Shown one piece after another: positions 481-43,512 of a DNA stretch of 64,000 nucleotides; position 1 is the stretch's first letter, and each line of letters begins with the position of its first letter. A program made the translations under genes and the position numbers. Under the pieces are notes generated by a model. The model was not told the DNA's origin and searched no databases. It saw nothing but the letters and a program-made list of their open reading frames with translations. This DNA is from Zancudomyces culisetae HAW-14-8 (lineage: Eukaryota > Fungi > Kickxellomycota): assembly GCA_052426225.1 (NCBI GenBank), contig JBNJNM010000006.1, positions 1,426,001 to 1,490,000 of the forward strand, in the 5' to 3' direction.

Positions 481-1216
481 TGTCGTAGTATTTGAAATTT
501 TATTTTATTTTCATTACTCCATCCATTGTTTCCAGCGGCTATTTCACATCTTTTCAGCCACTTTTTTGGTTCTAGTTCCTCTGCAGGGTTAAATATATCC
601 GGTTCCATAGTTATTCTATGTAAACTATTCAGATGTTGTAGTAAGATATTATCTACAGACTTCTTTTCTTCAATTTGTGCCGTTCTTGGCCTAGGCTTAT
701 TTTCTGGTACTGTCATTATTAATATTGCTTAATAAACTATATTGAATTGATTATTTTGTATTAGCTAAGTTTTTCTAGTGTCCTGGCTGGATCACCATAT
801 TCTGTCGTAGTATGTGAAATTTTATTTTATAATTTTGTATACCACAGTACGACGAGGCTGTGTATACTATAACTCTTTGGTTCAGAACACTAGTACTAAC
901 TTTCTTATAATATTTTATATGATATGTTTATTTTAATAGTAATAGATATACTTAAGTAAACGCTAAACTAAAGGATGAAGTTCGAACACTGTTTCCGTGT
1001 TCGAATGTTTCGAATTATATAGGGTGTTGTAAAATGGTAAAAGAAAAATTAAAGTAAAATAAAACAAACTACTTAAAGTATGAACGTTTTTGGGACACAT
1101 TGTAACAAAAACCACAATGGTGAAAAAGTTACGTCGAACAATGCCCAACGTTTTATAATAATTAAAACTATATAATATAAATAAAAGTAGGGTATGATGT
1201 AAAATTGCACACGACA
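481..1216 (-). mobile_element. Internally deleted Ty3/gypsy remnant: LTR ~803-1216, PBS 781-797, gag N-terminal fragment (ORF 426-716)
   Basis: TGTCGTAG...CACGACA termini; minus-strand TGGTGATCCAGCCAGGA just after the LTR; Gag-like EPDIFNP..PKKWLKRCEIAAGNNGW; LTR-end sequence TGTCGTAGTATtTGAAATTTTATTTTAT recurs at 481. Confidence 0.6.
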
Positions 1217-1225
1217 AATAACAGC

Positions 1226-1849
1226 TGTCGCAATATGGAATCTGGGGGTTACACAATCGCTCTGTAACCTTATCCCCATTTGCGCAGAATGGGGTGACAC
1301 ACACCCCTTTGGAGGTGTAGGGGAAAGTCTGATCCCCGACGGACTCCCTAGGCTGCTACGGATCTGTATCTGACGCACGCTAGTGGTCAGATCTTTCAAG
1401 GTCTGGGGGCTTAATACCCCAGCATCCTGATCCATGCTGCTGCCGGTACTCCTTCCGGAAGATGATGAAGTGGTACTTATTGCCATCTCCTCATCTTCAT
1501 ACCCATTTGAGTAGTACATTTTGTAGTTTTTTTGTATTTGTTATTATTATTAACTAGATTTTTATTAAATACGTCCGTATATTAAGACATGGATGACGCT
1601 TTCAAATTCATCTATGTCTTTTATTTATATAAACTAACTCTTTACATATAATCACTAAACTATCATCCATAAAAAAATAATATTGCTATATTAATGTTTG
1701 CGTTGAAACGTTGGTGTATGAATGTGTTGTTAACAATCATTCATACATATCTCAACGTTTCTTGAATGAACAATGTAATTGTTCAGCAACGTGTAATCTG
1801 ATCCAATACACGTTGCTATGCCCTGATACCCGGATCTAGTATCTCGACA
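1226..1849 (-). mobile_element. Solo LTR of the A/C family carrying the LTR-encoded ORF (1519 to 1073)
   Basis: TGTCG...CGACA termini; ORF has SSMDQDAGVLSPQTLKDLTTSVRQIQIRSS, homologous to the A and C N-termini; shares the TCATCCATGT..TACGGA motif. Confidence 0.85.
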
Positions 1850-2898: not shown

Positions 2899-3403
2899 GT
2901 CGTAGTTGTCGCATGAGTGAGCAATTGTACACTTAAGTACAATTGTAGTACAAAATGAAGTACACTCATCGCAGAATGAAAATTAAATTTTTGTATCTGC
3001 ATGAAATTCAATTTGGAAAATGAGCGACACAGTATGAAATTAATTCTACATGCTGAGTCGACTCAATAATGATAGAATTTAGTATGAAAAATGTCTTCAT
3101 ACTAAATCCTAAATTAAATCATAATTATTAGGTGTTCCCAACACCTAATTCAACATTCACTACATAAGTAAAATATGTAGAGGAAGTCAGTATCAAGTCA
3201 TAATAGTTCTTATAGTATATAAGTAATAGTATTTTAAACGTTTTGAAGATAGTAGCAGTTTAATAGAAATTTATATTTAAGGAACAAGAAGAGGGAAATG
3301 GAAAAACTTCATCCATGTTCTACTCTACGGATTAAATAGTATATTTATTTAAACACAATAAAACAAACTTCAGAATATTATTTATAATAACCAATAACCA
3401 AAA

Positions 3404-6400
3404 ATGAACTATTTCTTTTATAGTAAAAGCGAATCCAAGAGGGATTCAGAAACTAGCTCCAGTCTGAGTACGGCTAGTAGCATGGACCAAGAGACCGGGG
3501 TTCTAAGCCCTCGGACTCTTGGGGAGTTGACAGAAAGTGTCCGTCAACTCCAAATCCGTAGGAGCCCAGAACCAATGTCCGTGAGCAGCATCTCACCGAC
3601 ATTGTACAGGGGAAATAGCTCACCCGAGCACCCCTATATGCACATCACACTACGGGGTAGTGGTGCATCCTCATCAAGTGGTCATACCCGAACTGGTATG
3701 ACACGTGATGAACATAATAATCATGATTTCCCATATTATGATTATTACGACATGGCGTCAGCGACAGGATCATTTTTCAACAATGATCACAGGGATGAAG
3801 ACCAGGCAAGGAGTAGCCCAGCGATATCAGATTCACCAAAGTTATACTTTTCTCCTCGAAGTAGTAACAGTACAGACTCCACACCAAAACCTTCTACAGC
3901 ACAAGTAGCTAAGAGATTATTTACAAATGGAGTAAATAAACTTAAAGAATTTGCTCCAAAAAGTATCGAAATTTTCAACTTCGATACCAGTTCCGGAAAA
4001 CAAAATGAAAACAAAGAAGCAGGTACTAGTAAGACAAAAATCAGAACACAAGTAATAGGAAGTAAGACTGCTAAAGAGGTACTAGAATCCAATGTTAAAG
4101 CAACTCAAGAACGAATGAAAATGGGACAGAAAGAATTGGCACCAGGATGGTTACCAGTACCACCATCAGTATTTAGCAATTCATGGGACCAGGATCCTGA
4201 AGAGTTTTTAAATTATTTCTGCAAGCATGTAAACGCGTTGGAACACGTTATGACTTTGGAGGAAACGTTCATATATTTGGAAAACTTTTTAGAAGGCAGT
4301 ATAAAGAAAACATTAGTCGACCTAATGGTAATACAGGATGACTGGGAAGAATACTGCGATCTATTTATATCAACTTGTAATAAATATAGGGACACTTCGG
4401 AAGCTCGGAAACAGTTCGAAAAATATAATCTTTATAATAACAATCCTATAACAACCTTTGCGGATCTAAAAAGGTTGTTCAAAAACATGAAAATCGAGGA
4501 TACTGAGAAGATGGCGGAGAAAGTTTTTAAAAAACTGAATCCAGCAGATAAACAACATATGCGAAATAATAAGGATGGAATTACTATGAAATCAATGCTA
4601 ACATATATGATACAAAGAGAAGAAGATATTATCGAAACAAAAAAATCTCAGGGCATTCGTATACAGCATGGCAATAAACAAAAAATATATAATAATATTA
4701 AAAATCAAAAAACATATAACAACAAAAACATTAACAATACAATTAAGTTTAATAATTCAAATAACAATAGTCCATATAAACCAAGTGAGAAGCCGCGTAC
4801 AGAGAACAGAAGCAAATACGAGACTCCAACAAAGAATAATAGGTATAATAAAATGGAGAGAAACAACATCCGATGCTACAAGTGCCGACAATATGGCCAT
4901 TACGCAAGTGACTGTACGGCATCAATTGAGGATGTCGAAATGAAAACCGCCAGCCCAATTAAAAGAACCCCAGATAATCCTCGTCACGAAGTAAACTTAG
5001 TGGAGATAAAGGAACAAGGCATTAAGCATCCAGTAGTTTCGCAAAGAGAGATGAGTAATAAGATAACCGCCATAATGGGTAGTGTCAAAGTAAATAACAT
5101 AAGTACAAGATTTCAATATGACAGTGGAGCAGCCACCAATCTGATGAGCAGCGAAATGGCTAGAAGACTGAATTTAGGCAAAGGGCAAGAAACAACTGTG
5201 ACTATTGTTGGAGTGGAAGGACACCATTCCAAACCACGGTACTATCCATCAGTACAAATAACATTCGATACATTTAGTGTTTGCATACCAATATACTCAA
5301 TCAAGCAGGGAAAACCGGATCTTCTACTATTGGGAGTAGACCTATTTGCATCTTTAAAAGCACATATAAATATGGAGAAGAATATAATGTACTGCAACAT
5401 AAAAGGGAGAGTACATGAAGTACCTTTAATCTTAAGACAGGATGGCAATACAGAACCGACAAAAACCATTTTGGCAGTAAACCTGATAGATAACCAAGGC
5501 ATGATCATTAACCAACAGTTAGAAGAGCATCAAAAGCAGCAACTTAAGGCGGTGATAAGGGATAATGAGGATGAGTTTGCTCATGATCTAGAAGAATTTC
5601 GTAGAGCCAAGGTTGAACCGGTAATAATTGAATTACTCGACCCAAAACCGATTCATTGCAAACCATACCGACTAGCGAAAAGATTACAGGAGGAAGTCAT
5701 GAACCAAATAGCAGAAATGGAGACACAGGGTGTTATCATAAAATCGAACAGTCCATACTGTTTCCCTATGGTAGTAGTTAATAAAAAGGACGGGAAAAAG
5801 AGAATATGTGTCGACTACCGAAAGTTGAATGATATTTCAAGAAAAGATGCGTACCCAATTCCGAATATTGACGAAATACTCAGTAATCTACAAGGTGCAA
5901 AGTACTTTTCTACACTTGATGCGCTTAGTGGGTATTGGCAAATACCACTCGATCGTGTTACCCAAGAAATGACTGCCTTCACACCTGGCCCTGGCCTAGG
6001 GTTATTCCAATTTACTGTACTCCCATTCGGTCTGACGAATGCTCCATCCATAATTCAAAGAGTGATGGAGGACGTACTGAAAAGCGAATTACACAGATGC
6101 GTCATGGTGTACATTGACGATATTATAATTTATTCTAAATCGTTTAATGAACATATACAAGATGTATGTAGAATAATAGAATTGCTAAAAGCTAATAACA
6201 TTAAATTACATGCAGAAAAGTGTAGGATAGGGTACACGGAAGTAAAATATTTAGGACACACGATTAGTGCACAAGGAATAAAACCGGACACTGAGAACAT
6301 TCAAAAAGTGAAAACCTTAGTACCACCTAAGGATGTAGATGGGATTCGAAGTTACTTAGGACTAGTCGGGTACTACAGAAAATTCATAAAAAATTTTTCA

Positions 6401-6913
6401 GCTATAGCGAAGCCGCTAACAACGTTAACAAAGAAAAACGTAAACTATACATGGGGCGCCGAGCAACAACAGGCATATGAATACCTCCAGAATCAGTTAA
6501 TAAATCGACCAATACTCAACCACCCGGACTGGAACAAGGACTTCACAGTAATAACGGATGCATCAACCGCGGGCCTAGGTGCCATATTGGCACAAGGAGC
6601 AGAAGGCAAGGAAGGTGTAATATGTTATGCTAGCAGGACACTTTCGCCAGCAGAATCAAATTACAGCATTACACACCTAGAAGGGTTAGCAGTCGTCTGG
6701 GCGCTAACACACTTCCACTACTATTTATATGGAAGAAAATTTACCGTTATTACTGACCATAGCGCGCTGGTAGAGCTGTTCAAAAAGGAACCAGTAAAAG
6801 GCCGAATCGGTAGATGGGTGTTAAAACTGAGGCATTACGACTTTGATGTTATACACCGGGAAGGGAAAACAAACCCGGCAGACTACTTAAGCAGATTTCC
6901 CTGGGAGGATATA
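3404..6913 (+). CDS. Element A Gag-Pol, 5' part (LTR-encoded extension, Gag, CCHC knuckle, protease, RT, RNase H); cut by insertion E
   Basis: CYKCRQYGHYASDC, YDSGA, YIDD, TDAS, NPADYLSR; colinear with the element C ORF. Confidence 0.95.
3753..3770 (+). promoter_or_regulatory. Primer-binding site (3' end of a G73 tRNA, probably tRNA-Ser); identical in C at 26892
   Basis: TGG immediately after LTR; complement is ATCCTGTCGCTGACG-CCA. Confidence 0.8.
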
Positions 6914-7219
6914 TGTTATAATCAATGAGCTGCTTATAACTATGCTGTGATTAATATTCAGTATTATTATTTATTAGGAAGAAGTAGTTATTTAGAAAAA
7001 TATATTATTAGATGAGTTAATGATATATTTTTCTCTGATGTATCCCAAGGGAATTTCGAAGGGTTTATATATTTTTTCATCAGAGAAATTTGCTATGAAA
7101 AAACTTAGTGATAATAATTTTTTAGTTTTAAAATTTTACTATGTAAAAATGAACTAATTTAAAGTAACTATCAAAATTGAGTTTATCAAACTTCTTGTTT
7201 GATTTATTCATGAGATTAC

Positions 7220-7500
7220 TTTATCGATTTTAACATGTATTTTGTTTATCGATTTTAACATGTATTTTGTTTATCGAATTTTATCATGGTTTTTGGTTAT
7301 CCAATTTTAACATGTATTATGTTTATCGAATTTTATCATGGTTTTTGGTTATCCAATTTTATCATGGTTTTTGGTTATCTATTTTGCCTACTATATTGTA
7401 TATCGATTTTGCCTATGATTTTGTATATCGATTTTGCCTACGATATTGTATATCGATTTTGCCTATGATTTTGTATATCGATTTTAACATGAATTTTATA
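7220..7500. repeat. Degenerate 20-30-bp tandem repeats in E LTR (also ~12616-12896)
   Basis: Repeated TATCGATTTTAACATG / TTTTATCATGGTTTTTGGTTATC / TATCGATTTTGCCTA units. Confidence 0.9.
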
Positions 7501-7815
7501 AATTTAATTATTGAAAATTTTCTTTAATTTTCTTTGTCAATTTTCCCAATAATAAATACTGTGATTTCATGGTGAATTTTGCATACATGATTCCAATGTC
7601 GGAATGGCTTATTTGAATGTCGTAAGTGTAATAATAAAATAGTTTAATTTTTTATAGAACAAAAATGTAAACTAAAATTTATGTTCCGGGAATTTGCCAT
7701 TCCTAACATTTTAGGATCGATTCCAACAAAGATCCATTTTTTGGAATATATTGCCATTCCTAACATCACCCCCATCTTTATGATCAAGCTCCGCGAGATC
7801 GATAGCTTATCATGT

Positions 7816-10800
7816 TTAGGGTTTCTTGGATTTCTGATTAAACTGTTTTATTAGTCTTTGACAGTTTTCAAGATTTTCTGTTGGTTCCCAAGTGTTTTCG
7901 CAGTCTGAGAATCCTTTCCATTTGACGAGATAGTAAGCTCTGTTATTTGCTTTCTTGGCATCTAGAATTTCTTCTACTTCCCATTCTTCAGTATTATCTA
8001 AGATGATGGGTTCAGGTCTTGGCTTTATTTGTCCATTGATTATTGGTGCATGATATGGCTCAAGGAGTGATACATGGAATACATCATGGATTCTCATGTC
8101 ATCTGATAGTTTTAATCTGTAAGCCACTTTGTTTATTTGTTCCGTGATTTGAAACGGACCTATTCTTTGATTATCCAATTTATTAGATGGTCTCATAGTC
8201 TTGATGTTTTTACGATCTAACCATACTAGATCGTTTACTTTATACTTGATATTTATCCTTTTACGATTTGATTGTTTTACTGAGTTGTCTTGAGATTGAT
8301 TAAGTGTTGACTTAATTTCTTCACATGATTCTTGAATGACTTTGAGATACGAGGTTACTGCAGGATTACTTGATATATTTTCTTTAGTATTTAGAAAATC
8401 AGCCTTGGGGTTGTATCCATAGTTTGCATAAAACGGTGACATCTTGGTACTTGAGCTTACTGCGTTGTTGTAAGCGAACTCTGCGAATGGTAGTAAGGTA
8501 CTCCAGTTATCTTGATTGTAGTTCGAGTAATTTCTGAGGTATTGTTCAAGAGTTTGGTTGACTCTTTCTGTTTGTCCATTTGACTGTGGGTGATAAGCCG
8601 AAGATAGATTAACTTTTACTTTTAATAAATTCATGATTTCTTTCCAAAATTTTGATCTAAACTGAGATCCTCTATCTGATGTTATATCAATTGGCAGGCC
8701 ATGTAACTTGAATATATTATTTATGAATAACTTTGCAGTTCCTGCTGCATCAATGGTTTCATTACAAGGTATAAAATGTGCTTGCTTTGTAAAGCGACAC
8801 ACTATGACAAGAATAGAATCATAGCCATTTGAGGATGGTAGTTTTACTATGAAGTCCATAGAGATTTTGGACCACGGCTTTTCTGGGATTTCAAGTGGGT
8901 TTAACAATCCATATGGCTTATGTCTGTGGATTTTATTTCTTTGACAAATATCACATCCTTTGATATAATTATTAATGTATTGTCTCATTCCTTTCCAATA
9001 GTAATCCTTGGCGATTAAAGCAAAAGTTTTCTGTTGACCTAAATGTCCGGCGGTTAGGGCATCGTGGCGTGACTGAATTATTTCAAGTTTTTCTTTATCA
9101 GATGTAATTAGTTTAACCTGAGGGGTTTGAGTTTTAGCAGCATTAATCCATTTGGAAGCTGGGAGGATTGTGGCTTCATACTTTTGTGGGTTGGTGTATT
9201 CACCCCCCGTTTCAGGTAATAAGTCGGTCCTTCGACTCAATGCATCTGCAACTGGATTAAGTGCACCTGGTTTGTAACACAACTTGAAGTCAAATTCTGA
9301 CAAGGTATTTGCCCATCTGGCGTGTCTTTGCTTCAATATTCTCTTTGTTCTAAAGAATGTTAAGTTTCTGTGGTCAGAGAATACATTGATTGGATGGATT
9401 GCTCCACATAGGTAGTGTCTCCAGTGTTTAAGCGCGTTTACTATAGTCAATAATTCTTTGTCATGAATGTCATAATTAATTTCGGCGTCTAGTAGTTTGC
9501 GAGAATAGAAAGCAACTGGATGGAGAGTGGAATCTGTCTTGGATACTGGTTGATTTAACACGGCACCTATGGCATAATCTGAAGCATCAGTTTCAAGGTG
9601 AAAGGGTAAACTGGGATCTGGATGTGCGAGAATTGGTGCTGAAGTAACGGTTTTCTTGAGGAATTCGAATGCATCCTGGCATTCCGGAGTCCAATCAAAT
9701 GGAATATCCTTCTTGGTGAGGTTTGTGAGTGGTCTGACTATCTTTGAATAGTCCTTGATAAATTTTCTGTAAAAGTTAGCAAATCCTAAGAAACTCATTA
9801 CACCCTTAACATGGGTTGGTGTTTGCCAGCTAAGAATAGTTTGAACTTTTTCTGGGCTCATAGAGATACCTGTATCTGAAATTATGTAGCCCAAGAATTC
9901 TACACTTGTTTGGTCAAACTGACATTTCTCTAATTTTGCGTAGAGACCGTGAGTTCTTAGTCTTTCTAAGACTTCTTTTACATGAATGTTGTGTGATTCC
10001 TGATTTTCTGAGAATATTAGTATATCATCAAGATATACTATTACAGAAATGTCTAACATGTCTCTGAAAATGTCATTCACCATTGCTTGAAACACAGCTG
10101 GAGCATTGGTTAATCCGAATGGCATTACTAGGTATTCAAAGTGTCCATATCGGGAACGAAAGGCGGTTTTCCACTCTTCACCTGGCTTCATACGAACTAA
10201 ATTATATGCACCTCTCAGATCTATTTTGGTAAATATTCTAGCATCATTGAGATGATCTAATAGTTCAGAAATCAGTGGTAGTGGATACCGATCTTTCACA
10301 GTTAGCTCGTTTAAGTCCCTGTAATCGATACAAGGTCTTAAACCTCCGTCCTTTTTCTTTATGAAAAATATCGGAGCACCTGCTGTGGAATGACTTCTCC
10401 TGATAAATCCTTTCTTGAGATTTTCTTTGATATACTCATCTAGAGTCTTGAGTTCTGGACCTGACAGGTTGTATAACGGCTTGAACGGAATCTTGGCTTC
10501 TGGGTCTTTGAGCGGGATTTCACAATCATAGGGTCTAAGTTCTGGCAATGTGTCTGCTTTCTTTTTTGAGAATACATCTGAGTAATCTTGATATTTCATG
10601 GGTAGTTTTTTGGAGTGGTTTTCAAATGAGTCCTCATCTTCTGAATCATCGTATGGATCAAATGATTTCTCAGACAAGGTAATTTGGCTAAGAGTTAAAT
10701 TATCTGTAGTAGATTCGGGCAGGTTGAAGTTCAACTTCAGTTTTACCCAATCAATGATTGGTTGTTGTTGTTTTAACCATGGCAATCCTAGTATAACGGG

Positions 10801-13166: not shown

Positions 13167-14521
13167 CCAGAGCAGATTGAAGAAGTGTTATACATTTCTG
13201 TTAAAGGATATGAGGAGTTGAAAAACAAGATAAAATATAATATAGCTATAAATGACACAACAAAAGGCGACAAACTGATATCAAAGTTAGCCTTACAAGG
13301 AGATACCATTATACATAACGACAAAGTAAAGAGGAAATACTTACACCCAAATGAGTTGCTCGAAACAATATATAGAATCCACTACGAACAACACCGAAAC
13401 GCAGTTGCAACGTACCGATACCTGAGCGAACACTATTACGCTCCTAATAGTTACCCAATGGTGAAACTAATCTGTGAACGCTGCGAAGTGTGCCAACGAA
13501 CTAATTATAGCCAACGAAAAGCTGAAAGACTACACCCAATTATTCCAAATGAACCGTTTAAGGTATGGGGGCTGGATGTAGCAGGTCCTATGAATCCCAT
13601 AACAAAACCTGAAGGAAATAAATACATAATTGTAGCAGTGGATTATTTCACAAAGTGGCCCGTAGCACTAGCAGTAAAAGCAATAAACGCCGAAGTAATA
13701 TGTACCTTCATAACGGAGATGATCATAGCGAACTTTGGAGTACCGAAAATATTAATCACAGATCGAGGAACACACTTAAGCAACGAGGCTTGTGCAAGAT
13801 TCAATGAGTTTTTGGGGATCGAACAAAAACCGGTGACGGCGTATAGGCCATCATCAAACGGACAAGTTGAACGGTCTATTCAAACTTTAAAACAATTACT
13901 AATCAAACAGACAATTAGCAGACCGGAGAACTGGGACGCATACATATGGCGCACACTGCTAACAATGAGGACAACAATTCACAAAAGTCTTGGAAGATCG
14001 CCAGCAGAGGTAGTATATGGTTTAAAACTGCTTACTCCGGAAATATGGAGTAGTGAAATACCAAAGTACCTTGAAAAGGAAGTTGCGCTTCGTACTAGAC
14101 TAGAGTTTCTGGAGAAGAAATACCAACATACAGACAGTTGTCGATTGAGTTAGCCAAAAAACAAAAAGCATATGAAGAGAATAGGTACAACAAAGGGGTA
14201 CGACCAAGGGTATTCGAAATAGGGGAACAAGTACTTAAAGCCACGGCAACCCGTAATCCTTTTACAATGCACAGGAACGTCGGACCATTCGAAGTAATTA
14301 AAAACCTAGGTAACGGGATATATGAAATAATAGACAGAGCGGGTAACGTTGATAAAGTACATGTGGACAGATTGAGAAAATATTACCCCGAATACGAAAT
14401 CATACCAGACCTATACACAGGCAGTGCTCGAACAACTGGCGCAATATCCATGAAACAGCCTACAGAAGATAAGATGATCGAGGACGATCAAGAATTAAGT
14501 GGGGAAATGTCGCATGAGTGA
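13167..14521 (+). pseudogene. Element A integrase (3' part of Gag-Pol) with a 1-nt frameshift near 14115-14120
   Basis: HHCC, WGLDVAGP, TDRG, NGQVER; C-terminus (GPF module) continues in the other frame (ORF 14138-14521); colinear with C. Confidence 0.9.
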
Positions 14522-15004
14522 GCAATTGTACACTTAAGTACAATTGTAGTACAAATTGAAGTACACTCATCGCAGAATGAAAATTAAATTTTTGTATCTG
14601 CATGAAATTCAATTTGGAAAATGAGCGACACAGTATGAAATTAATTCTACATGCTGAGTCGACTCAATAATGATAGAATTTAGTATGAAAAATGTCTTCA
14701 TACTAAATCCTAAATTAAATCATAATTATTAGGTGTTCCCAACACCTAATTCAACATTCACTACATAAGTAAAATATGTAGAGGAAGTCAGTATCAAGTC
14801 ATAATAGTTCTTATAGTATATAAGTAATAGTATTTTAAACGTTTTGAAGATAGTAGCAGTTTAATAGAAATTTATATTTAAGGAACAAGAAGAGGGAAAT
14901 GGAAAAACTTCATCCATGTTCTACTCTACGGATTAAATAGTATATTTATTTAAACACAATAAAACAAACTTCAGAATATTATTTATAATAACCAATAACC
15001 AAAA

Positions 15005-15370
15005 ATGAACTATTTCTTTTATAGTAAAAGCGAATCCAAGAGGGATTCAGAAACTAGCTCCAGTCTGAGTACGGCTAGTAGCATGGACCAAGAGACCGGG
15101 GTTCTAAGCCCTCGGACTCTTGGGGAGTTGACAGAAAGTGTCCGTCAACTCCAAATCCGTAGGAGCCCAGAACCAATGTCCGTGAGCAGCATCTCACCGA
15201 CATTGTACAGGGGAAATAGCTCACCCGAGCACCCCTATATGCACATCACACTACGGGGTAGTGGTGCATCCTCATCAAGTGGTCATACCCGAACTGGTAT
15301 GACACGTGATGAACATAATAATCATGATTTCCCATATTATGATTATTACGACAACAGAGATGTCGTATAA
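15005..15370 (+). CDS. 3'-LTR copy of the LTR-encoded Gag N-terminal ORF of A
   Basis: Identical to the first 116 aa of ORF 3404; expression unknown. Confidence 0.4.
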   Translation: MNYFFYSKSESKRDSETSSSLSTASSMDQETGVLSPRTLGELTESVRQLQIRRSPEPMSVSSISPTLYRGNSSPEHPYMHITLRGSGASSSSGHTRTGMTRDEHNNHDFPYYDYYDNRDVV

Positions 15371-20672: not shown

Positions 20673-20678
20673 GAGACA

Positions 20679-25850: not shown

Positions 25851-25966
25851 TCTTTTTATATTTACAAATATTACAATATAAACACCAAATAATAAAAAAA
25901 TGATATTAAACTTTGTATTATACAACAAAAATAAATATAAAAAAAATTTTGACAAATCAAAAAGCA

Positions 25967-26048: not shown

Positions 26049-26053
26049 ATATG

Positions 26054-29000
26054 TGTCTTAATAAGCCGAATTTCATTATAAACTCGAATAGTGTACGAGA
26101 AATTTCGCTGTACACTCATCGCGGGATGTCAATTTTTATAATTTTTATTGTCGTTTAAATTTTTTGTTTAAATTAATTTCGACTCAGCATGAAATAAATT
26201 CTACATGCTGAGTCCATTCAATAATGATGATTCTAGTACGAAATATGTTTTCATACTGAACATCAAATAATTTTAATGATTATGTGTTCCCACACATAAT
26301 CGTAATTGCACGTATGCTGCAATTATGAAACAAAACTATTAGTATACTTAACAGAATGTTAATAGTGTATAATTACTTTATTTTATTGGAAAACTAGTTT
26401 AGCATATAAGTTTAATCATATATATATGTGATATAGCAGTTTAGTAGAAAACTCATCCATGTCCTACTATACGGATTAATTAATAAACTCAGTTTAAATA
26501 AAGATAATTCAAATCAACTTAAAGTAAAATAATCATAATGATTAACTATTTGTTTAACACAGGTGTGAGAGAGTCTAGGAGAGATTCGTCAACCACCTCC
26601 AACAGTACTAGGGGCAGTAGCATGGACCAGGATATCGGGACACTCAGTCCTCGAACCCTTGGGGAACTGACGGAAAGCGTCCGACAGATCCAGATCCGTA
26701 GAAGCCCGGAAAGCATGTCGGTAGATACACCATCTCCGACGGGATATAGGGATAGTGTCTCATCCGAGAACATCCTAATGAACATTCAGTTACACAAGAG
26801 GAGTGTAACCGAGGCCACAGAACAAGCTTCCCCAAGCTTGGCACGTGGTGAGAGCGCGAGTGGGATTACCGAAAGATCCCACTCTGCGACATGGCGTCAG
26901 CGACAGGATCATCATTACACTGATGATCCATTGGATATGAATATACCGGCATCAAGCCCAGACCTTTGCAGCTCACCCGAAATTTACTTCTCACCAAAAC
27001 ATTCACAATCTATGCCTATAACACCTAATTCATACAGACCTTCAACAGCACAAGTGGCTAAAAGACTATTCTTTAATGGTGTAAATAAAATTAAGGAATT
27101 AGCACCCAAAACAGTGGAAATTTTCAACTTTGACACTAAAACAGAACAAGGAACCCAGACAAATGAATCAGGCTCCAGTAAGAATCCTCGCAGACCACAG
27201 GTTATAGGAGCTAAGACCGCCAAAGAAGTACTTGAAACCAATGTGAAGGCAACACAAGATAGGATCATTCGCGGACAGGACAAAACAGCACCCGGTTGGT
27301 TGCCGATCCCACCTCCGATATTCAAAAACACTTGGGACCAAGACCCCGAAGAATTTCTAAACAAATTTTGCAAACACGTAAACTCGTTAGAACAGATACT
27401 TACATTAGACGAAACATACACTTACCTGGAAACATTTTTGGAGGGACCAATAAAGAAAACGGTTGTAGACCTTATGACCATTCAGGACAACTGGGAAGAT
27501 TTTTGCACCTTATTTCTTTCGACCTGTAACAAATACCGCGATACTTCAGAAGCTCGTAAACACTTTGAAAAATACAACCTATATAATAATAACCCAATTA
27601 CTACTTTTGCCGATTTAAAAAGGCTGTTTAAAAATATGAAGATTGTGGATGAGGATAGAATGGCAGAGGAAGTGTTTAAAAAATTAAACCCGACAGACAA
27701 ACAACACATAAGAAACAACAATAATGGTATAACTATGAAATCAATGTTAGCTTACATGATACAAAGGGAGGAAGACATTATCGAAACTAAGAAGTCACAA
27801 GGGATTAGAAACATTAAAAATGATAATTCAAAATACAATAACACCAACAAAAATTATAAAACATATAATAACAAAAATATTCACAATACAAATACTTATA
27901 ATAACCATAAAAAGATTTATAATACAGACAATACAAATACCTATAAACAAAATCAATTCAAGCTAAGAGAAAATAAGAGTAGCGGTATCAGAAGCCAATA
28001 TGAAACTCCATCACGACGTAATAAACAACAGAATAAAGACTACCCAAATGTTAGATGCTATAAATGTCGGCAAAACGGGCATTATGCTAATAACTGCCCA
28101 AATACAATTGAGGATGTCGAAATGAAGACCGCTACTCCAATAAAACGTTCAACATCAGACACAAATCATGAAGTAAATCTAGTGGAACTCCAGAGACAAG
28201 GCAAAAATCAGATTACATATTCACAACATGACATGAGTAGAAAAATAAATGCGATCATGGGAAGCGTTTACATCAATGGAATATGTACGCAGTTTCAATA
28301 TGATAGCGGAGCAGCGACAAACCTTATGAGCTACAACATGGCAAAGACATTAAACCTAGGCACCGGACAGGAAACAAACGTGGCAATCGTCGGGATCGAT
28401 GGAAACCCGTACAAACCAAGATACTACCCGCAAGTTGAACTGAAATTCGACACATTCAGTATATTAATACCTATTTACTCCATCGAAAAGGGTAAACGCG
28501 ATCTGTTATTATTAGGAGTAGACTTACTTGCTTGTCTAAATGCACAGATTGACTTGATGAATGGTAATATAGTTTGTGAATTAAATGGCGTTCGTCACAA
28601 CATACCTATATTTTTAAGAACAGATGGTACAGAACATGAAGATAACCAAAAAGCTATTAATAAAGTGGATATCAGTGAACAAATAGTCAACCAAAACTTA
28701 CCTAGTGACTTAAAGCAACGCATGGATATCCTAATCAACAAGAACAGGGATAGGTTCTCAGACAGATTAGAAGAGTTTCAGGGAGCAATGGTAAATCCAG
28801 TCAATGTGGAACTAGATGATAAGAGACCCATTCACTGTAAGCCATACCGCTTGGCTAAGAGATTACAATGGGAAGTGCTAGACCAAATAGCGGATATGGA
28901 ACAACAAGGAGTGATTGTCAGATCAAACAGTCCTTACTGCTTTCCTATGGTAGTTGTCAACAAAAAAGATGGGAAAAAAAGGATCTGTGTTGATTACAGA

Positions 29001-32000
29001 AAACTAAACGACATATCCAAGAAAGACTCTTACCCAATACCAAATATCGAAGAAATTCTAAGTAACTTACAAGGCTCCAAATATTTCACAACATTAGATG
29101 CACTAAGCGGGTATTGGCAGATACCCCTAGATAAGCCTACTCAGGAAATGACAGCTTTCACGCCTGGTCCAGGACTAGGTTTGTACCAATTCACGGTACT
29201 TCCCTTCGGGCTAACCAATGCCCCTGCTATTTTTCAAAGAGTAATGGAGGAAGTTCTTAGGAGTGAATTACACCGATGTGTACTAGTTTATATAGATGAT
29301 ATAATAATATTCTCGCGAACCTTCGAAGACCACTTACAAGATGTGCAACGTGTTATCGAATTACTAAGAAGTAAAAATATAAAATTACATTCGGAAAAGT
29401 GTAAAATAGGTTTTACAGAAGTAAAATACCTAGGCCATATAGTTAGTGCTGAAGGAATAAGACCGGATACTGAAAATATTAATAAAATAAGAAACATAAA
29501 GCAGCCAACCAATGTAGATGGAATAAGAAGTTACCTCGGTTTAGTAGGATACTATAGAAAGTTTATTAAAAACTTCTCAACAATCGCTAAACCCCTAACA
29601 ACTCTGACAAAACAAGGTGTACCATTTGTATGGGGCTCAACACAACAAGAAGCATACAACTACTTTCAAAAACAACTTACCAGTAAACCTATATTGAACC
29701 ATCCAAACTGGGAAGAAGACTTTACAGTAATAACCGACGCCTCCAAAGTAGGATTAGGGGCCATATTGGCACAAGGTGTAGAAGGAAGAGAAAAAATAAT
29801 TTCCTACGCCAACAGAACATTAAGTCCACCAGAAACAAACTACAGTATAACTCACCTGGAAGGACTAGGAGTAGTATGGGCAGTCACCCACTTTCACTAC
29901 TACCTCTATGGACGCAAGTTTACCGTTATAACCGACCACAGCGCATTGGTGGAACTTTTCAAGAAGGAACCAGCTAAAGGACGGATAGGAAGATGGATTC
30001 TTAAACTCAGACACTACGATTTTAATGTAGTACATAGAGAAGGTAAAAAGAATCCTGCAGATTACCTTAGTCGTTTTCCATGGGAAGAAATTCCGGAGCA
30101 AATTGAAGAGGTATTATACATTTCAGTTGAAGGATATGAATCGTTAAAAGCAAAAGTAAAAGATGGAGTTATCAATCACAATAGCGAGGGACCTATAAAA
30201 AATCTTGTTGTTGAAAACGACAAGCTAATTTACAATGATAAAACAAAAAGAATATATATACATCCAAATGAGTTATATGAAGTTATTTACAACATACACT
30301 ATGAACAACACAGAGATGTAAACTCTACATATAAATATCTATGTGACCATTACTATGCGCCAAGCAGTTATTCAGTTGTCAAGCTTATCGTAGAACGCTG
30401 TGAAGTTTGTCAACGTTCGAACTACACAATTAGAAAAGCCGAAAAGCTACATCCTATAATCATACATGTACCCTTCAAAGTATGGGGATTGGATGTAGCA
30501 GGACCAATAAATCCCACTACGCAACCACAAGGTAATAAGTATATTATAATGGCAGTAGACTACTTTACCAAATGGCCTGTTGCTTTAGCAGTTAAATCTG
30601 TTAACGCCGAAGTAATATGTACGTTTATTACTGAAATGATTATATCAAATTTTGGGGTACCAAAAATATTAATAACGGACAGAGGATCCCACTTAAGTAA
30701 TGAAGCATGTGCCAAGTTCAACGAATTCCTGGGTATCGAACAAAAACCAGTAACAGCATACCGGCCTAGCGCAAATGGCCAAATTGAAAGATCAATACAA
30801 ACTTTGAAACAGCTGCTGATAAAACAAACTATAAGTAGACCAGAAAATTGGGATGCTTATATATGGAGGGTGTTATTAACAATGCGAACTACCGTACACA
30901 GAGGATTGGGACGTTCCCCAGCCGAGATAGTGTATGGACTAAATTTATTGACACCAGAAGTTTGGACAAGTTATATACCGGAAGATATTGAAAAGGAACT
31001 AGCTTTAAAAAACCGGATAAAAATCTTGGAAAAAGATATACCCACCTACAGAAGGTTAACAATTGATCTGGCAAGAAAGCAAAAGATTTATGAAGAAGAT
31101 AGATACAACAAAGGAGTTAAGCCAAGAACACTACACATAGGTGAACAAGTGTTAAAAGCAACAACTACCAGAAATCCATTCACTATGCACAGAAACGTAG
31201 GTCCATTCGAAGTAATCAATGACCTAGGAAATGGAATATATGAGATAGAGGATCGGAACGGAAATGTTGATAAAGTACACGTAGACCGTTTAAGAAAATA
31301 CTATTCGGAATACGAAATCATACCGGACTTATACACTGGTAGTGCAAGAACAACAGGAGCTAAAATGATGAAGAAACCTTCAAATTACAATTCGATCGAG
31401 GACGATCAAGATTCAAGGGGGGGAATGTCGCAATAAGCCGAATTTCATTATAAACTCGAATAGTGTACGAGAAATTTCGCTGTACACTCATCGCGGGATG
31501 TCAATTTTTATAATTTTTATTGTCGTTTAAATTTTTTGTTTAAATTAATTTCGACTCAGCATGAAATAAATTCTACATGCTGAGTCCATTCAATAATGAT
31601 GATTCTAGTACGAAATATGTTTTCATACTGAACATCAAATAATTTTAATGATTATGTGTTCCCACACATAATCGTAATTGCACGTATGCTGCAATTATGA
31701 AACAAAACTATTAGTATACTTAACAGAATGTTAATAGTGTATAATTACTTTATTTTATTGGAAAACTAGTTAAGCATATAAGTTTAATCATATATATATG
31801 TGATATAGCAGTTTAGTAGAAAACTCATCCATGTCCTACTATACGGATTAATTAATAAACTCAGTTTAAATAAAGATAATTCAAATCAACTTAAAGTAAA
31901 ATAATCATAATGATTAACTATTTGTTTAACACAGGTGTGAGAGAGTCTAGGAGAGATTCGTCAACCACCTCCAACAGTACTAGGGGCAGTAGCATGGACC

Positions 32001-32263
32001 AGGATATCGGGACACTCAGTCCTCGAACCCTTGGGGAACTGACGGAAAGCGTCCGACAGATCCAGATCCGTAGAAGCCCGGAAAGCATGTCGGTAGATAC
32101 ACCATCTCCGACGGGATATAGGGATAGTGTCTCATCCGAGAACATCCTAATGAACATTCAGTTACACAAGAGGAGTGTAACCGAGGCCACAGAACAAGCT
32201 TCCCCAAGCTTGGCACGTGGTGAGAGCGCGAGTGGGATTACCGAAAGATCCCACTCTGCGACA
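26054..32263 (+). mobile_element. Ty3/gypsy element C (A family), 838-bp LTRs 26054-26891 and 31426-32263, TSD TATG
   Basis: LTR pair with 3 differences seen; PBS at 26892; PPT AAGGGGGGGAA; TATG at 26050-53 and 32264-67. Confidence 0.97.
26538..31436 (+). CDS. Element C intact single-ORF Gag-Pol, starting in the 5' LTR and ending in the 3' LTR
   Basis: 1632 aa; CCHC, YDSGA, YIDD, TDAS, HHCC, TDRG, GPF. Confidence 0.96.
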   Translation: MINYLFNTGVRESRRDSSTTSNSTRGSSMDQDIGTLSPRTLGELTESVRQIQIRRSPESMSVDTPSPTGYRDSVSSENILMNIQLHKRSVTEATEQASPSLARGESASGITERSHSATWRQRQDHHYTDDPLDMNIPASSPDLCSSPEIYFSPKHSQSMPITPNSYRPSTAQVAKRLFFNGVNKIKELAPKTVEIFNFDTKTEQGTQTNESGSSKNPRRPQVIGAKTAKEVLETNVKATQDRIIRGQDKTAPGWLPIPPPIFKNTWDQDPEEFLNKFCKHVNSLEQILTLDETYTYLETFLEGPIKKTVVDLMTIQDNWEDFCTLFLSTCNKYRDTSEARKHFEKYNLYNNNPITTFADLKRLFKNMKIVDEDRMAEEVFKKLNPTDKQHIRNNNNGITMKSMLAYMIQREEDIIETKKSQGIRNIKNDNSKYNNTNKNYKTYNNKNIHNTNTYNNHKKIYNTDNTNTYKQNQFKLRENKSSGIRSQYETPSRRNKQQNKDYPNVRCYKCRQNGHYANNCPNTIEDVEMKTATPIKRSTSDTNHEVNLVELQRQGKNQITYSQHDMSRKINAIMGSVYINGICTQFQYDSGAATNLMSYNMAKTLNLGTGQETNVAIVGIDGNPYKPRYYPQVELKFDTFSILIPIYSIEKGKRDLLLLGVDLLACLNAQIDLMNGNIVCELNGVRHNIPIFLRTDGTEHEDNQKAINKVDISEQIVNQNLPSDLKQRMDILINKNRDRFSDRLEEFQGAMVNPVNVELDDKRPIHCKPYRLAKRLQWEVLDQIADMEQQGVIVRSNSPYCFPMVVVNKKDGKKRICVDYRKLNDISKKDSYPIPNIEEILSNLQGSKYFTTLDALSGYWQIPLDKPTQEMTAFTPGPGLGLYQFTVLPFGLTNAPAIFQRVMEEVLRSELHRCVLVYIDDIIIFSRTFEDHLQDVQRVIELLRSKNIKLHSEKCKIGFTEVKYLGHIVSAEGIRPDTENINKIRNIKQPTNVDGIRSYLGLVGYYRKFIKNFSTIAKPLTTLTKQGVPFVWGSTQQEAYNYFQKQLTSKPILNHPNWEEDFTVITDASKVGLGAILAQGVEGREKIISYANRTLSPPETNYSITHLEGLGVVWAVTHFHYYLYGRKFTVITDHSALVELFKKEPAKGRIGRWILKLRHYDFNVVHREGKKNPADYLSRFPWEEIPEQIEEVLYISVEGYESLKAKVKDGVINHNSEGPIKNLVVENDKLIYNDKTKRIYIHPNELYEVIYNIHYEQHRDVNSTYKYLCDHYYAPSSYSVVKLIVERCEVCQRSNYTIRKAEKLHPIIIHVPFKVWGLDVAGPINPTTQPQGNKYIIMAVDYFTKWPVALAVKSVNAEVICTFITEMIISNFGVPKILITDRGSHLSNEACAKFNEFLGIEQKPVTAYRPSANGQIERSIQTLKQLLIKQTISRPENWDAYIWRVLLTMRTTVHRGLGRSPAEIVYGLNLLTPEVWTSYIPEDIEKELALKNRIKILEKDIPTYRRLTIDLARKQKIYEEDRYNKGVKPRTLHIGEQVLKATTTRNPFTMHRNVGPFEVINDLGNGIYEIEDRNGNVDKVHVDRLRKYYSEYEIIPDLYTGSARTTGAKMMKKPSNYNSIEDDQDSRGGMSQ

Positions 32264-32284
32264 TATGGGAGCTCCGAGGATTGA
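31910..32284 (+). CDS. 3'-LTR copy of the LTR-encoded Gag N-terminal ORF of C
   Basis: Identical to the first 118 aa of ORF 26538; expression unknown. Confidence 0.4.
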   Translation: MINYLFNTGVRESRRDSSTTSNSTRGSSMDQDIGTLSPRTLGELTESVRQIQIRRSPESMSVDTPSPTGYRDSVSSENILMNIQLHKRSVTEATEQASPSLARGESASGITERSHSATYGSSED

Positions 32285-32338: not shown

Positions 32339-32344
32339 ATTATG

Positions 32345-39840: not shown

Positions 39841-42800
39841 TTATGTTGCTTCAGAGTTTAATACGTGTAGAGTCAAATTTTCTCTTGTTCTACGTGATAA
39901 CTGATAGTATGTATCAAATATTCCTCTGCTTGCCCAAAATCCTTGAGTAATAACATCATCATATGTTGCACCTGATGAAGTAGCACGAGTTGATCCAAGT
40001 GCTCTTGCTTTTGGTACTTTAGCGTTTGGCGGTAATGGTATAAGCGACATAAGTTTGTTAATGTGCTTGCTGATACGCTGTGCTCCAATGTTAGTGCTGT
40101 GGTCCTTGAGACTCCTGATGAGATAGAATATTGAGTTTCCGTCGAGCAAAGGATGTGGTTTTACGCAAGGTGTAACCGCAATCCGCTTTTTGTAAACCTG
40201 ATAAGTTTCAACCGGACATAATTTTTTGTCAGAGTGTGCATGGATTATAGAAACTTTTTCAATTGGAGTTCCATTGCGTTTCTCCTTTGGTCCAACAATA
40301 ATAAACTTGATGTATTCTCTTGTCACTGACGTCTTGCTGTCGTCAATCCTCTCAATGTCGCTTGGCCTGAGAAAGCCACAGATGGCTATGAGCCAGCATA
40401 GTTTTGCTGTCAAGTCATACTTTGACATTCTGGAGTTAGGCCCAAGTTTCCTGATGTGGTCAATTATTGGACCGATGTCGTAAAGCGGATTGTCAAAGGA
40501 TCTGACGTTTGATGAAGATAGTTGTTTGAGATACTCTTTCATTAGTGGATCGTCACTGAAAGAAGCCCAATCACTGGTTATGTCAAGAATGGCGGACTTG
40601 TAGTTCTTGACTGTTCCGAGTCTCCAGTTTAGCGCCTTCCGCTGCTGCTCCAGATAGTTGATAACGTCAACGACTGTTACGTTTTCTATGGAGATTGAAG
40701 ATGTAGAAAGCCACTGTAGGAACTTGGTCTTCGGGTTCAAGTATTTCTTCTGCCTCGTCTTAACTCGAGTGTTGTCGAGCATCAAATTGATGACCTGGTC
40801 ATCTAATCCTGCTTCCTGATACCTTGCGCGCTTAACCGCCAAGCCGTAAGTGACCATGTCTTGTTGCGCATTGTCGCTGCTTTTCCGCTTCTCGGGTCTG
40901 GGATAACTGCTGACGGATGAATCTTGATTGGCGGTGCAATTGACAGGCTCTTCAGGTCCGGATACCACGGGGCTGATCTCCAGAACGGCGTGATCAGAGT
41001 CGCCGTGATTCTCTCCTGACGGATCTTCTGGATGGTACGCTGGATCAGATTCCACGGTGGACACATGTATGGATTCTTCCACACTGTCCAACTGTGGTTG
41101 AAGGCGTTGATCCTGACTGCTTGGGGGCAGTATTTCCAACTCACAAATGTGTTCAGTTTGTGATTGGTGCTGCTCGCAAACATGTCGATATCGTGAGGAC
41201 CAAAGTATTTTTGAATCCTTTGAAACACTCTTTCCGATATCGACCATTCGGTCTGCAAAGTAAGCCGGGATGGGGCGTCTGCCGGATTCACAATGGATGG
41301 TACGTACTGGATCTGTACCCTGGTCCCGTTGCTGATGCAGTGTTTTCACATCAGTTCCGATATGTCTAGCAGGTTGGGTGATCTGGTCCCTCCCTGTTTC
41401 TTGACATAGCTGATGGAGGTGTTGTTGTCGCAGTATACAACCACACTCCTGCCCTTTACCTGGGGCATCTTGATAGCCTTGTATATGGCTAGTAGCTCCT
41501 TGGCGTTGATCGGGAGCTTGGACTGTGCTTTGGTCCATATTCCTGAGTACTGGCTCTGACCAATAACTATCCCCCAATGGAAGTCGCTCGCGTCTGTGTA
41601 GACTTCCACTTCCGGAATCTCTGGGAGGAAGCTCAGGCCGTTCCATTCCTTCAGATGATCTCTCCACCAGATCAGGTTGTCTAGAGCTGGCTGATCCAAA
41701 GATACTTCTGTGCTCCAATCCCGCGTGGTCCGCAGGGTGGCATTCTTGAGCTCCAAAAGCCTCCTGCTCATGAGTCTGCCTGGACGGAGAGCGATGTTCA
41801 CTGCCTGTGTCTTGCCAATGAAAGATGCTAAGCATCTCAGCGTCGTCTTCCCATTCCTGATCAGTTTGGATGCCTCTCGCGTGAGATCCCTGAGTTTCTG
41901 CTTGGGAATCCTGAAGCTCATTTGGCGGGTGTTGATGTCCATACCCAAATGGCTGATTGACTGCTTGGGGTTCATTGACGACTTCTCGTTGTTTATAATG
42001 AACCCTAGCTTGACTAGCTTGTTTGCAACCATCGCAGTGTACTTGGTACACTCGCTTTTGGTTGATCCCAAGACCAGCAAATCGTCCAAGTAGCTCGAGA
42101 TTCGGATCCCTCGAGCTCTGGCCCACTTGAGAACTGGCTTTAGTATTTTGGTGAATACTAGCGGGCTTAAGGACAGACCAAATGGCAGTACCCTGTACTG
42201 GTAGATGCGATGGCCCCACGTGAACCTGAGATATTTTCTTGACGCCTTGTTGATGAGCACGTGCAAGAAAGCATCGCTGAGATCGATGCTTGTCATCCAG
42301 TCGCCCTTTCGCAACATTCGTGAGATGGTGTTGAGTGATTCCATCTTGAAATGCTGCTCGGGGATGTACTGGTTTAAAGGTCTCAGGTTGAGGACCATCC
42401 GTGTTCCTCCATTCTTCTTTGGGACGGTGAATGTCCTTGAGAAGAATCCTGGCTGCGCTGCTGAAACTTCCTCTATAGCTTTTTTGGAGAGGAGACTTGT
42501 AATCTCCTGCTCGACGACCTTTTCCGGAAGTTTCTTTAAGTCCTTCACGCACGGCTTTGGCTGCTTGACCGTGGGAGGATGCGCATTGAAGGGGATACGA
42601 AACCCTTCCTTGATCACCTGGAGTACCCACTGGTGATCGGTAAGCTTCTTCTATGCCTCCTGGAAGAGCTTCAGTCTGCCCCTTACGCTTGGGGTCTGAT
42701 GCTGCTGCCACCCCGAAAATTATTCTTAGGAGCATTGAAACGGGGCTGCCTCTGCTCCTGGACCTGCTGTGGCTCTTGGATCTGTGGTTGCTGGCCTTGC

Positions 42801-43512
42801 TGCATTCCCATGAGGCTTGGAAATGCTCTCTGACCGGTGTATCTGGGCCTGCGTGGCTGGTAGCTCTTGAGTGCCCTCTGGGCCGCTTGCTGGCTGGCCT
42901 TTGCTTCGACAATCTGGCTTGTGTCGACAAGGGACTTCTTGGTTTCTGGATAGAGTTGCGGCGTGTCGGTTTCAACACCCGCATCTCTGTATGCCTGATT
43001 GATTCTGCACTGGCTGAGGTGCGTTGCCGCATCAGCCAAGAGAATCCTGATTGAGTTGGCAAACTCAATAACCTTGGAGACTGGCACTTGGCTGCCACCC
43101 TGAATGCACTCATGCACAAAGAAGTCAATCGGCCTGGTGATTGCCGATAACCTGTACTGCGCATCATACATGGCGGCGTCGGTGCGTTTGGCAGAGCTGG
43201 ACAACTTGACATTGACCGCGGGAGGGTCATAGTCCATGGCGGAGTTTCTGGGGACGGCGGCAAAAAACTTCTTCCGATTGATGTCGGACAGAGGGGACTT
43301 GAAGAAGTCTTCCGTAACGGTTGGAAGAGCTTCTTGGAGCTCTTTGTAAAGCTCCATGTCGGCGGGCTGTGGCCTTTCTGTGATATGAGAAACTGGCGGA
43401 TCCATATCCACTGACTCTGAGACTGATGCTGCCTGTTGCTGTGAACCTGATTCCTCCAGAACAGTAAGTCTGTTGAGGATTTCCTGAAGCATTTCTTGCG
43501 AAATGTTTGCAT
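39841..43512 (-). CDS. DIRS ORF3: tyrosine recombinase at the C-terminus of a long overlapping frame (true start uncertain)
   Basis: FLRPSD, PKEK, LCPV, ARALGST, GFWAS..FDTYY. Confidence 0.85.
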   Translation of the reverse strand: MQTFRKKCFRKSSTDLLFWRNQVHSNRQHQSQSQWIWIRQFLISQKGHSPPTWSFTKSSKKLFQPLRKTSSSPLCPTSIGRSFLPPSPETPPWTMTLPRSMSSCPALPNAPTPPCMMRSTGYRQSPGRLTSLCMSAFRVAAKCQSPRLLSLPTQSGFSWLMRQRTSASAESIRHTEMRVLKPTRRNSIQKPRSPLSTQARLSKQRPASKRPRGHSRATSHAGPDTPVREHFQASWECSKASNHRSKSHSRSRSRGSPVSMLLRIIFGVAAASDPKRKGQTEALPGGIEEAYRSPVGTPGDQGRVSYPLQCASSHGQAAKAVREGLKETSGKGRRAGDYKSPLQKSYRGSFSSAARILLKDIHRPKEEWRNTDGPQPETFKPVHPRAAFQDGITQHHLTNVAKGRLDDKHRSQRCFLARAHQQGVKKISQVHVGPSHLPVQGTAIWSVLKPASIHQNTKASSQVGQSSRDPNLELLGRFAGLGINQKRVYQVHCDGCKQASQARVHYKQREVVNEPQAVNQPFGYGHQHPPNELQDSQAETQGSHARGIQTDQEWEDDAEMLSIFHWQDTGSEHRSPSRQTHEQEAFGAQECHPADHAGLEHRSIFGSASSRQPDLVERSSEGMERPELPPRDSGSGSLHRRERLPLGDSYWSEPVLRNMDQSTVQAPDQRQGATSHIQGYQDAPGKGQECGCILRQQHLHQLCQETGRDQITQPARHIGTDVKTLHQQRDQGTDPVRTIHCESGRRPIPAYFADRMVDIGKSVSKDSKILWSSRYRHVCEQHQSQTEHICELEILPPSSQDQRLQPQLDSVEESIHVSTVESDPAYHPEDPSGENHGDSDHAVLEISPVVSGPEEPVNCTANQDSSVSSYPRPEKRKSSDNAQQDMVTYGLAVKRARYQEAGLDDQVINLMLDNTRVKTRQKKYLNPKTKFLQWLSTSSISIENVTVVDVINYLEQQRKALNWRLGTVKNYKSAILDITSDWASFSDDPLMKEYLKQLSSSNVRSFDNPLYDIGPIIDHIRKLGPNSRMSKYDLTAKLCWLIAICGFLRPSDIERIDDSKTSVTREYIKFIIVGPKEKRNGTPIEKVSIIHAHSDKKLCPVETYQVYKKRIAVTPCVKPHPLLDGNSIFYLIRSLKDHSTNIGAQRISKHINKLMSLIPLPPNAKVPKARALGSTRATSSGATYDDVITQGFWASRGIFDTYYQLSRRTRENLTLHVLNSEAT
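40803..42690 (-). pseudogene. DIRS ORF2: RT, RNase H and Dam-like methyltransferase domain, with two in-frame stops (42651-53, 41346-48)
   Basis: GRLKLFQEA*, IDLSDAF, LPFGLSLSP, YLDD, YTDASD, DN, NPADAPSR, DMFAS, CPPW. Confidence 0.9.

Follow-up and report, generated by a model that had tools for sequence, protein, structure and literature searches.

In Ty1, Gag translation begins inside the long terminal repeat (LTR), with the AUG at nt 294 of the 334-nt LTR and ~14 codons encoded by the LTR itself. The GAG3 start of Ty3 lies downstream of the LTR and of the primer-binding site (PBS), and two reading frames are used. The glyco-Gag of murine leukemia virus (MLV) is an alternative isoform whose start is found downstream of the PBS and outside the LTR, the sag gene of mouse mammary tumor virus (in U3) and the nef gene of human immunodeficiency virus (overlapping U3) are separate accessory genes whose expression is from the 3´ end or via spliced RNAs, and an internal transcript gives rise to Ty1 p22, which corresponds to the C-terminal half of Gag. 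Here we analyzed a 64,000-nt stretch of the genome of the fungus Zancudomyces culisetae HAW-14-8 (contig JBNJNM010000006.1, positions 1,426,001 to 1,490,000; hereafter the window), which contains two LTR retrotransposons, elements A and C, whose Gag-Pol open reading frame (ORF) is open from an ATG deep inside the 5´ LTR. We consider it probable that these are gypsy elements in which Gag-Pol translation starts within the LTR, that the R-U5 part of the LTR is both coding and structured as RNA, and that the related ORFs in solo LTRs are by-products.

LTR limits were determined by self-BLAST of the window together with direct reading of the ends. A first-pass annotation, made from the sequence without database searches, had proposed that about 117 codons of Gag-Pol are encoded inside the LTR, in agreement with ATGs that we found 349 nt (A) and 354 nt (C) upstream of the LTR end, corresponding to 116 and 118 codons, respectively. 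As it also stated, the ORF reads through U5 and the PBS: a PBS-like 19-mer (TGGCGTCAGCGACAGGATC) that begins with TGG is located directly 3´ of the LTR, within the ORF, in both elements. In element C, the ORF begins within the 5´ LTR, crosses the PBS and the polypurine tract (PPT) and reaches a stop 10 nt into the 3´ LTR, and every nucleotide of the internal region is coding. The PPT before the 3´ LTR is AAGTGGGGAAA in A and CAAGGGGGGGAA in C. A 4-bp TATG target-site duplication surrounds C; A is without a flush duplication. Pfam matches on the 1632-aa product of C comprise zf-CCHC (residues 506-522), protease (PR, 577-664), RVT_1 (reverse transcriptase, RT, 807-969), RNase H (RH, 1032-1160) and integrase (IN, 1244-1410). 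With a CCHC knuckle followed by PR, RT, RNase H and IN, A and C are Ty3/gypsy (Metaviridae) elements; membership in Ty1/copia (Pseudoviridae) was ruled out, as IN is C-terminal rather than before RT.

Elements A and C have features in common with several of the described systems. They resemble Ty3 in the PR-RT-RH-IN order and in insertion a few bases upstream of the 5´ ends of tRNA genes, but differ from it in that a single ORF spans U5 to U3. For C, the distance between the start of the 5´ LTR and the 5´ end of a tRNA-Leu gene is 4 nt, and tRNA-Ile and tRNA-Val genes lie 5-6 nt from the ends of other LTRs in the window; as for Ty3, insertion is targeted a few bases upstream of Pol III genes. 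Like MLV glyco-Gag, the elements have an extra N-terminal Gag segment in a 5´ leader that would also hold cis-acting RNA signals, though the extension here is apparently constitutive and borne on the LTR. Coding sequence inside the LTR, and hence duplicated, recalls sag and nef, but the coding part here is in U5 and continuous with Gag. The only likeness to Ty1 p22 is the idea of a partial Gag that restricts its own element. The closest parallels are Ty1 and Ty2, in which the start codon is likewise upstream of the LTR/PBS border, the PBS is in the ORF and a cis-acting RNA structure overlaps Gag. They differ from A and C in that the LTR supplies ~14 codons as opposed to the 98-118 counted here across families, in being copia-type (IN before RT) rather than gypsy-type and in that the LTR-coded part here has an orphan motif of its own that is under strong selection. 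The 5´ end of A and C thus works like that of Ty1 in an element of the gypsy lineage, extending the Ty1 peculiarity of a Gag start in U5 about eight-fold and into another lineage. In Ty1, the PBS is inside GAG, PBS mutations were reportedly designed to keep the GAG amino-acid sequence, and the extreme 5´ end (nt 1-7) pairs with nt 264-270, a site ~260 nt into the transcript (PMC5454406). A literature search for other elements with a Gag start deep in the LTR found none, its coverage being incomplete and no proof of absence.

Six LTR families across the genome

Searching the whole 27-Mb assembly in all six frames, with the LTR-coded peptide as query, gave at least 150 places, 100 of which were used for the analysis of copies and families. 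The copies sort into six LTR families, denoted A, D (A-like), C, F, E and S, with S represented in the window by the solo LTR at 1226-1849. The motif that the first-pass annotation had described as common to A, C and this solo LTR is present in all three and was detected in three further families elsewhere in the genome. For every family with a 5´ LTR copy, the ORF is continuous into Gag from an ATG 98-118 codons inside the LTR. This includes family F in an independent public assembly (GCA_001969505.1, LSSK01001129.1), where a continuous 1637-aa ORF extends from the LTR-coded ATG; the deposited gene model for this copy is 1155 aa with predicted introns and starts 59 codons further downstream.

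Family E is a ~3.7-kb non-autonomous LTR element with a 735-840-aa ORF that encodes Gag, a CCHC knuckle and protease and no RT or IN (examples at L074:1304-4557 (G000:C23) and G000:C6:1371804-1377954). There are several identical copies, some in tandem with an LTR-to-LTR spacing of 2900 nt, and the LTR-coded N-terminus is kept, with a ratio of nonsynonymous to synonymous rates (dN/dS) of 0.02 for the domain relative to A. Retention of the domain in an element limited to Gag and PR agrees better with a contribution to Gag function than with one to integrase-mediated targeting.

The first-pass annotation had suggested that the LTR-coded part might form a phospho-regulated or targeting module. 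A profile search of 1.84 billion representatives with the LTR-coded domain matched only three proteins, the 'hypothetical proteins' OMH80460.1, OMH82249.1 and OMH83560.1, all of which are Z. culisetae solo-LTR ORFs. Word-index searches with the N-terminus and with the Gag core gave only one match, a Z. culisetae Pro-Pol polyprotein, while an ESM Atlas search with the LTR-coded domain gave no usable match and Pfam returned nothing for Gag residues 1-499. A search with Pol retrieved only generic gypsy elements from animals, plants and algae, at 31-50% identity. Elements A and C would be members of a group, restricted to this species, that comprises at least six tRNA-gene-targeting Ty3/gypsy families of Z. 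culisetae. LTR-aware annotation would correct both the solo-LTR 'hypothetical proteins' and the late-starting family F gene model.

Codon-level selection and RNA structure in the LTR-coded part

Residue 261 of the C Gag is aligned with residue 8 of its counterpart in a neighboring conventional family, indicating that the A/C group has an N-terminal Gag extension of ~250 residues, the first half of which is LTR-encoded. The extension precedes the capsid-like domain, and its LTR-coded part is mostly disordered and rich in Ser, Thr and Pro. AlphaFold2 modeling of residues 1-210 predicted mostly disorder (mean predicted local distance difference test score, pLDDT, 49), with short helices at residues 36-46, in the core motif, and 165-183. 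The core motif may act as a short binding or phospho-regulated element within a disordered Gag extension.

Selection was assessed from Nei-Gojobori counts on codon alignments of the family representatives. For the 31-codon core (S25-P55) in comparisons among A, C and E, the proportions of synonymous (pS) and nonsynonymous (pN) differences were 0.6-0.7 and 0.03-0.08, giving a dN/dS of 0.02-0.06 with synonymous sites near saturation. These values correspond to 13-15 synonymous and 2-6 nonsynonymous differences, though nonsynonymous sites are ~3.3 times more numerous. The pN of the capsid-like core of Gag was 0.14-0.17, dN/dS for the rest of the LTR-coded part was about 0.45 and dN/dS for codons 1-26 was 0.25-0.8. 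The 31-residue core is thus under stronger purifying selection than the capsid-like core. In all six families, frame +1 contains 0 stops, while each of the other five frames contains 4-14; in combination with the core dN/dS, this is beyond chance. Indels in the LTR-coded part are multiples of three. Selection on the motif at the level of codons, as the first-pass annotation had surmised, is therefore stronger than could be told from the window. The PBS, which directly follows the LTR, has the opposite pattern: its nucleotides are invariant across all families and are read in two frames, with the frame restored just downstream, a feature that the annotation had overlooked.

The annotation had likewise set codon-level conservation against conservation of nucleotides; the former held for the motif, but part of the conservation is also at the level of nucleotides or RNA structure, which the annotation had missed. 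Folding of the LTR-coded region was more stable than that of dinucleotide shuffles (z = -8.9 for A and -5.7 for C) and than that of shuffles that keep the protein and the codon usage (z = -6.9 for A, -3.9 for C, -8.5 for E and -3.2 for S), compared to z scores of +0.6, +0.3 and -1.1 for equal-sized control windows in the Gag core subjected to synonymous-codon shuffles. A consensus fold of five families consists of 12 helices, in which 89.6% of the cells are paired versus 33-44% after sliding of the partners. Compensatory changes are seen in 20 of 83 pairs, versus 4-8 in the slid controls and 7.6 ± 2.2 in shuffles. Structure along element C is clustered in the LTR as opposed to the internal region. 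Within the core, the 8-mer ATCCGTAG is unchanged even at synonymous positions. Collectively, these data document conservation at both levels, codon and RNA structure, and predict a structured RNA domain that overlaps the 5´ Gag coding sequence beyond what coding constraint accounts for. By analogy with TIPIRT of Ty1, the long R-U5 would combine coding with a cis-acting RNA function in packaging, dimerization or priming. A U5 that is at once protein domain and conserved RNA structure would offer a clean natural system for the study of overlapping constraints. The 8-mer is also complementary to CTACGGAT in a conserved block further upstream, with a predicted helix probability of 0.97-0.98 in A, C and D; we treat this long-range helix as a lead only.

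U3 also has long perfect hairpins (in 2907-3335 and 26054-26303), including an 18-bp stem at 3073-3111 and a 10-bp stem at 3127-3149, and the U3 of element C gave a folding z of -5.2. A bacterial promoter and terminator scan was irrelevant here, apart from the hairpins that it flagged.

Transcription start, start codon and the frames in solo LTRs

A block conserved in all six families lies ~25-35 nt downstream of a TATA-like string. Transcription probably starts from this block, at ~3320-3335 in A, and would be followed by a short AT-rich, ATG-free leader and by translation from the first AUG (3404). The interval from block to ATG is 58-79 nt across families and contains 1-4 AATAAA or ATTAAA hexamers. 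An ATG within the block (3315-3317 and the matching sites in all families) opens a mini-ORF of 2-7 codons, whose presence in the RNA depends on the exact transcription start site (TSS).

The LTR of family D is a mosaic. Informative sites in its U3 are 144 C-like and 16 A-like, those from 3336 to the LTR end (R-U5) are 161 A-like and 16 C-like, and those in the internal region are even (176 and 178). Family D thus changes from C-like to A-like sequence between 3319 and 3336, with a second switch at the PBS, and the stretch between the two switches corresponds to the predicted span of minus-strand strong-stop DNA (R-U5). A and D differ by a dS of ~0.16 in R-U5, while their internal regions are saturated. 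The junction in the conserved block would place the start of R upstream of the ATG. Moreover, codon-level selection together with in-frame continuity with Gag requires that the ATG region is in translated genomic RNA. Because R-U5 is copied as minus-strand strong-stop DNA, the N-terminus of Gag would be inherited with the LTR and be swappable between families, with D as an example; LTR swapping could in this way exchange part of a structural protein. U3 and R-U5 appear to be separate heritable modules, with the ATG in the R-U5 module, whether recombination took place during strand transfer or at the level of DNA.

Every 3´ and solo LTR carries the ATG and an open frame of 98-118 codons followed by a tail of random flanking sequence, and the three short ORFs pointed out in the first-pass annotation, starting at 15005 (121 aa), 31910 (124 aa) and, on the minus strand, 1519 (148 aa), exist. 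From such ORFs it had concluded that solo LTRs carry a gene, perhaps for a copy-number control factor; in one version of this reading, a free N-terminal Gag peptide would act in copy-number control or as a dominant negative. The ORFs themselves stood, but we find it very unlikely that they are genes. Each LTR does provide a presumed promoter, a leader, an ATG and the open codons, 61 of the 75 non-5´ copies are still open, and dN/dS for the private changes of these copies is below 1 (0.54 overall and 0.34 in the core). The near-full-length copies are, however, 96-100% identical to the family representative, such that open frames are expected without selection and reflect the youth of the copies. 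In 14 of the 75 non-5´ copies, a stop codon, loss of the start or an indel disrupts the frame, compared to 0 of 16 5´ copies. Of the 118 private substitutions found in the non-5´ set, 41 are synonymous, 71 missense and 6 nonsense, a nonsense share of 5% versus the 3-4% expected under neutrality. Relative to the between-family value of ~0.04, constraint on the core is relaxed ~8-fold, and the C-terminal tails are random. New copies never receive the U5 of a 3´ or solo LTR, so the element has no means of its own to preserve an ORF at these positions. We attribute the deficit of dN/dS below 1 to variation inherited from selected source elements, as expected in an incomplete sample, with weak selection possible; divergence of U3 versus the ORF was discarded as a test of selection, as U3 modules are recombinant or misaligned in several families. 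The evidence says that the solo- and 3´-LTR ORFs are by-products in near-neutral decay and not genes, and they would be inevitable products of the LTR-borne start. A copy-number-control factor of the Ty1 p22 type kept by selection was rejected on the basis of the neutral rate of nonsense changes and the broken copies, and an LTR-borne accessory gene of the sag or nef type was rejected given that the ORF is downstream of the putative TSS and continuous with Gag in all families. A more elaborate idea, in which the Gag N-terminus is a mobile module exchanged via strong-stop DNA and peptides from more than 100 solo and 3´ LTRs titrate a host partner of the motif, so that LTR number serves as a copy-number sensor, strikes us as equally improbable.

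Two further explanations concern the open frame itself. Conservation could be due purely to nucleic-acid structure, the U5 hairpin array, with an incidental and untranslated frame, as might be suggested by the strong conserved hairpins with compensatory changes and by the invariance of ATCCGTAG at synonymous positions as well. This is hardly credible in view of the excess of synonymous over nonsynonymous differences in the core, the fact that frame +1 alone is open in six families, the indels in threes, the continuity of the Gag frame despite the two frames in which the PBS is read, and an ATG-free leader that ends in an ATG with A at -3. Alternatively, translation could begin at the invariant Met27 (MDQ...) rather than at 3404, with the first 26 codons serving as leader. 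Met27 has A at -3 and G at +4, conservation of codons 1-26 is weak, and public gene models for solo-LTR ORFs begin at MDQ. Yet each of the six families has a further ATG 26-28 codons upstream from which the frame remains open, with indels of 3 nt, an RR[DE]S motif recurs in four families, and no other ATG separates the conserved block from this upstream ATG, whose context is A-rich. We regard initiation at Met27 as unlikely.

Several points count against the interpretation that we favor, in which Gag-Pol starts at 3404 inside a coding and structured R-U5. The start is itself a prediction, and the invariant Met27 in its good context could be the true start, though this would still leave ~90 LTR-encoded codons. 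Sequence features likewise serve to place the TSS, the poly(A) site and the R/U5 border, and the mosaic in family D could have arisen by recombination of DNA in the conserved block instead of by strand transfer. The predicted helix between ATCCGTAG and CTACGGAT has a probability of ~0 in E and S. A pattern search for a tRNA gene matching the PBS returned only other copies of the PBS. Finally, the private changes in non-5´ copies, including those in the core, have the dN/dS below 1 noted above.

Feature coordinates and neighboring elements

Table 1. Features of elements A and C and of the family S solo LTR (positions in the window)
Feature	Position	Strand	Remarks
5´ LTR, element A	2907..3752	+	846 nt, TGTCG...CGACA; 99.9% identical to 14508-15353 (one mismatch)
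TATA-like element	3270..3282	+	A/T-rich; TATA-like strings at the matching place in other families; putative function
Conserved block (TCATCCATG...TACGGA)	3305..3335	+	common to six families; putative R start and TSS region
Putative 5´ leader	3336..3403	+	GC 15-19%; ATG-free in every family; A at -3 of ATG
Gag-Pol ORF, element A	3404..6928	+	shortened by nested chromovirus
LTR-encoded (putative U5) start of Gag-Pol, element A	3404..3752	+	first 116 codons; Ser/Thr/Pro-rich disordered extension
Conserved hairpin array over the ORF	3440..3720	+	helices 1-5 and 7-11 of the consensus structure
31-codon core S25-P55 (SSMDQ..GVLSPRTLGELTESVRQLQIRRSP)	3476..3568	+	dN/dS 0.02-0.06; invariant residues; predicted short helix, residues 36-46
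8-mer ATCCGTAG	3554..3561	+	nucleotide-invariant; complementary to CTACGGAT at 3325-3332 (conserved block)
PBS-like 19-mer TGGCGTCAGCGACAGGATC in the ORF, element A	3753..3771	+	read as ASATGS in A/D/F and WRQRQD in C/E/S
3´ LTR, element A	14508..15353	+	carries by-product ORF 15005..15370 (121 aa)
5´ LTR, element C	26054..26891	+	ATG at 26538; PBS at 26892-26910
Gag-Pol ORF, element C	26538..31436	+	intact, 1632 aa, Gag-PR-RT-RH-IN
3´ LTR, element C	31426..32263	+	carries by-product ORF 31910..32284 (124 aa)
Solo LTR, family S	1226..1849	-	ORF 1519..1073, 148 aa; first 98 codons LTR-encoded

Two neighboring tRNA-targeting gypsy families in the window (15361-20673 and 44398-54557) have a conventional Gag start, downstream of shorter LTRs (336-375 nt). 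The second is a tandem pair with a common middle LTR (three 336-nt LTRs with a spacing of 4912 nt and 99.98% identity) and begins 6 nt upstream of a tRNA-Val gene; a similar tandem array was found for family D at G000:C6:1001131-1012672. Element C is located between minus-strand tRNA-Phe and tRNA-Leu genes (25966-26053 and 32264-32339), which were only a few bases apart before the insertion. The chromovirus nested in A (6909-13161) is young, has an integrase with a chromodomain and is flanked by 857-nt LTRs that are 99.9% identical and contain 25-26-nt tandem repeats. At 39433-43869, a GC-rich (46-48%) segment is enclosed by 287-nt inverted repeats with 99% identity and contains a 1223-aa ORF on the minus strand (39841..43512) that has no Pfam match; this segment could be a DNA transposon or another type of element.

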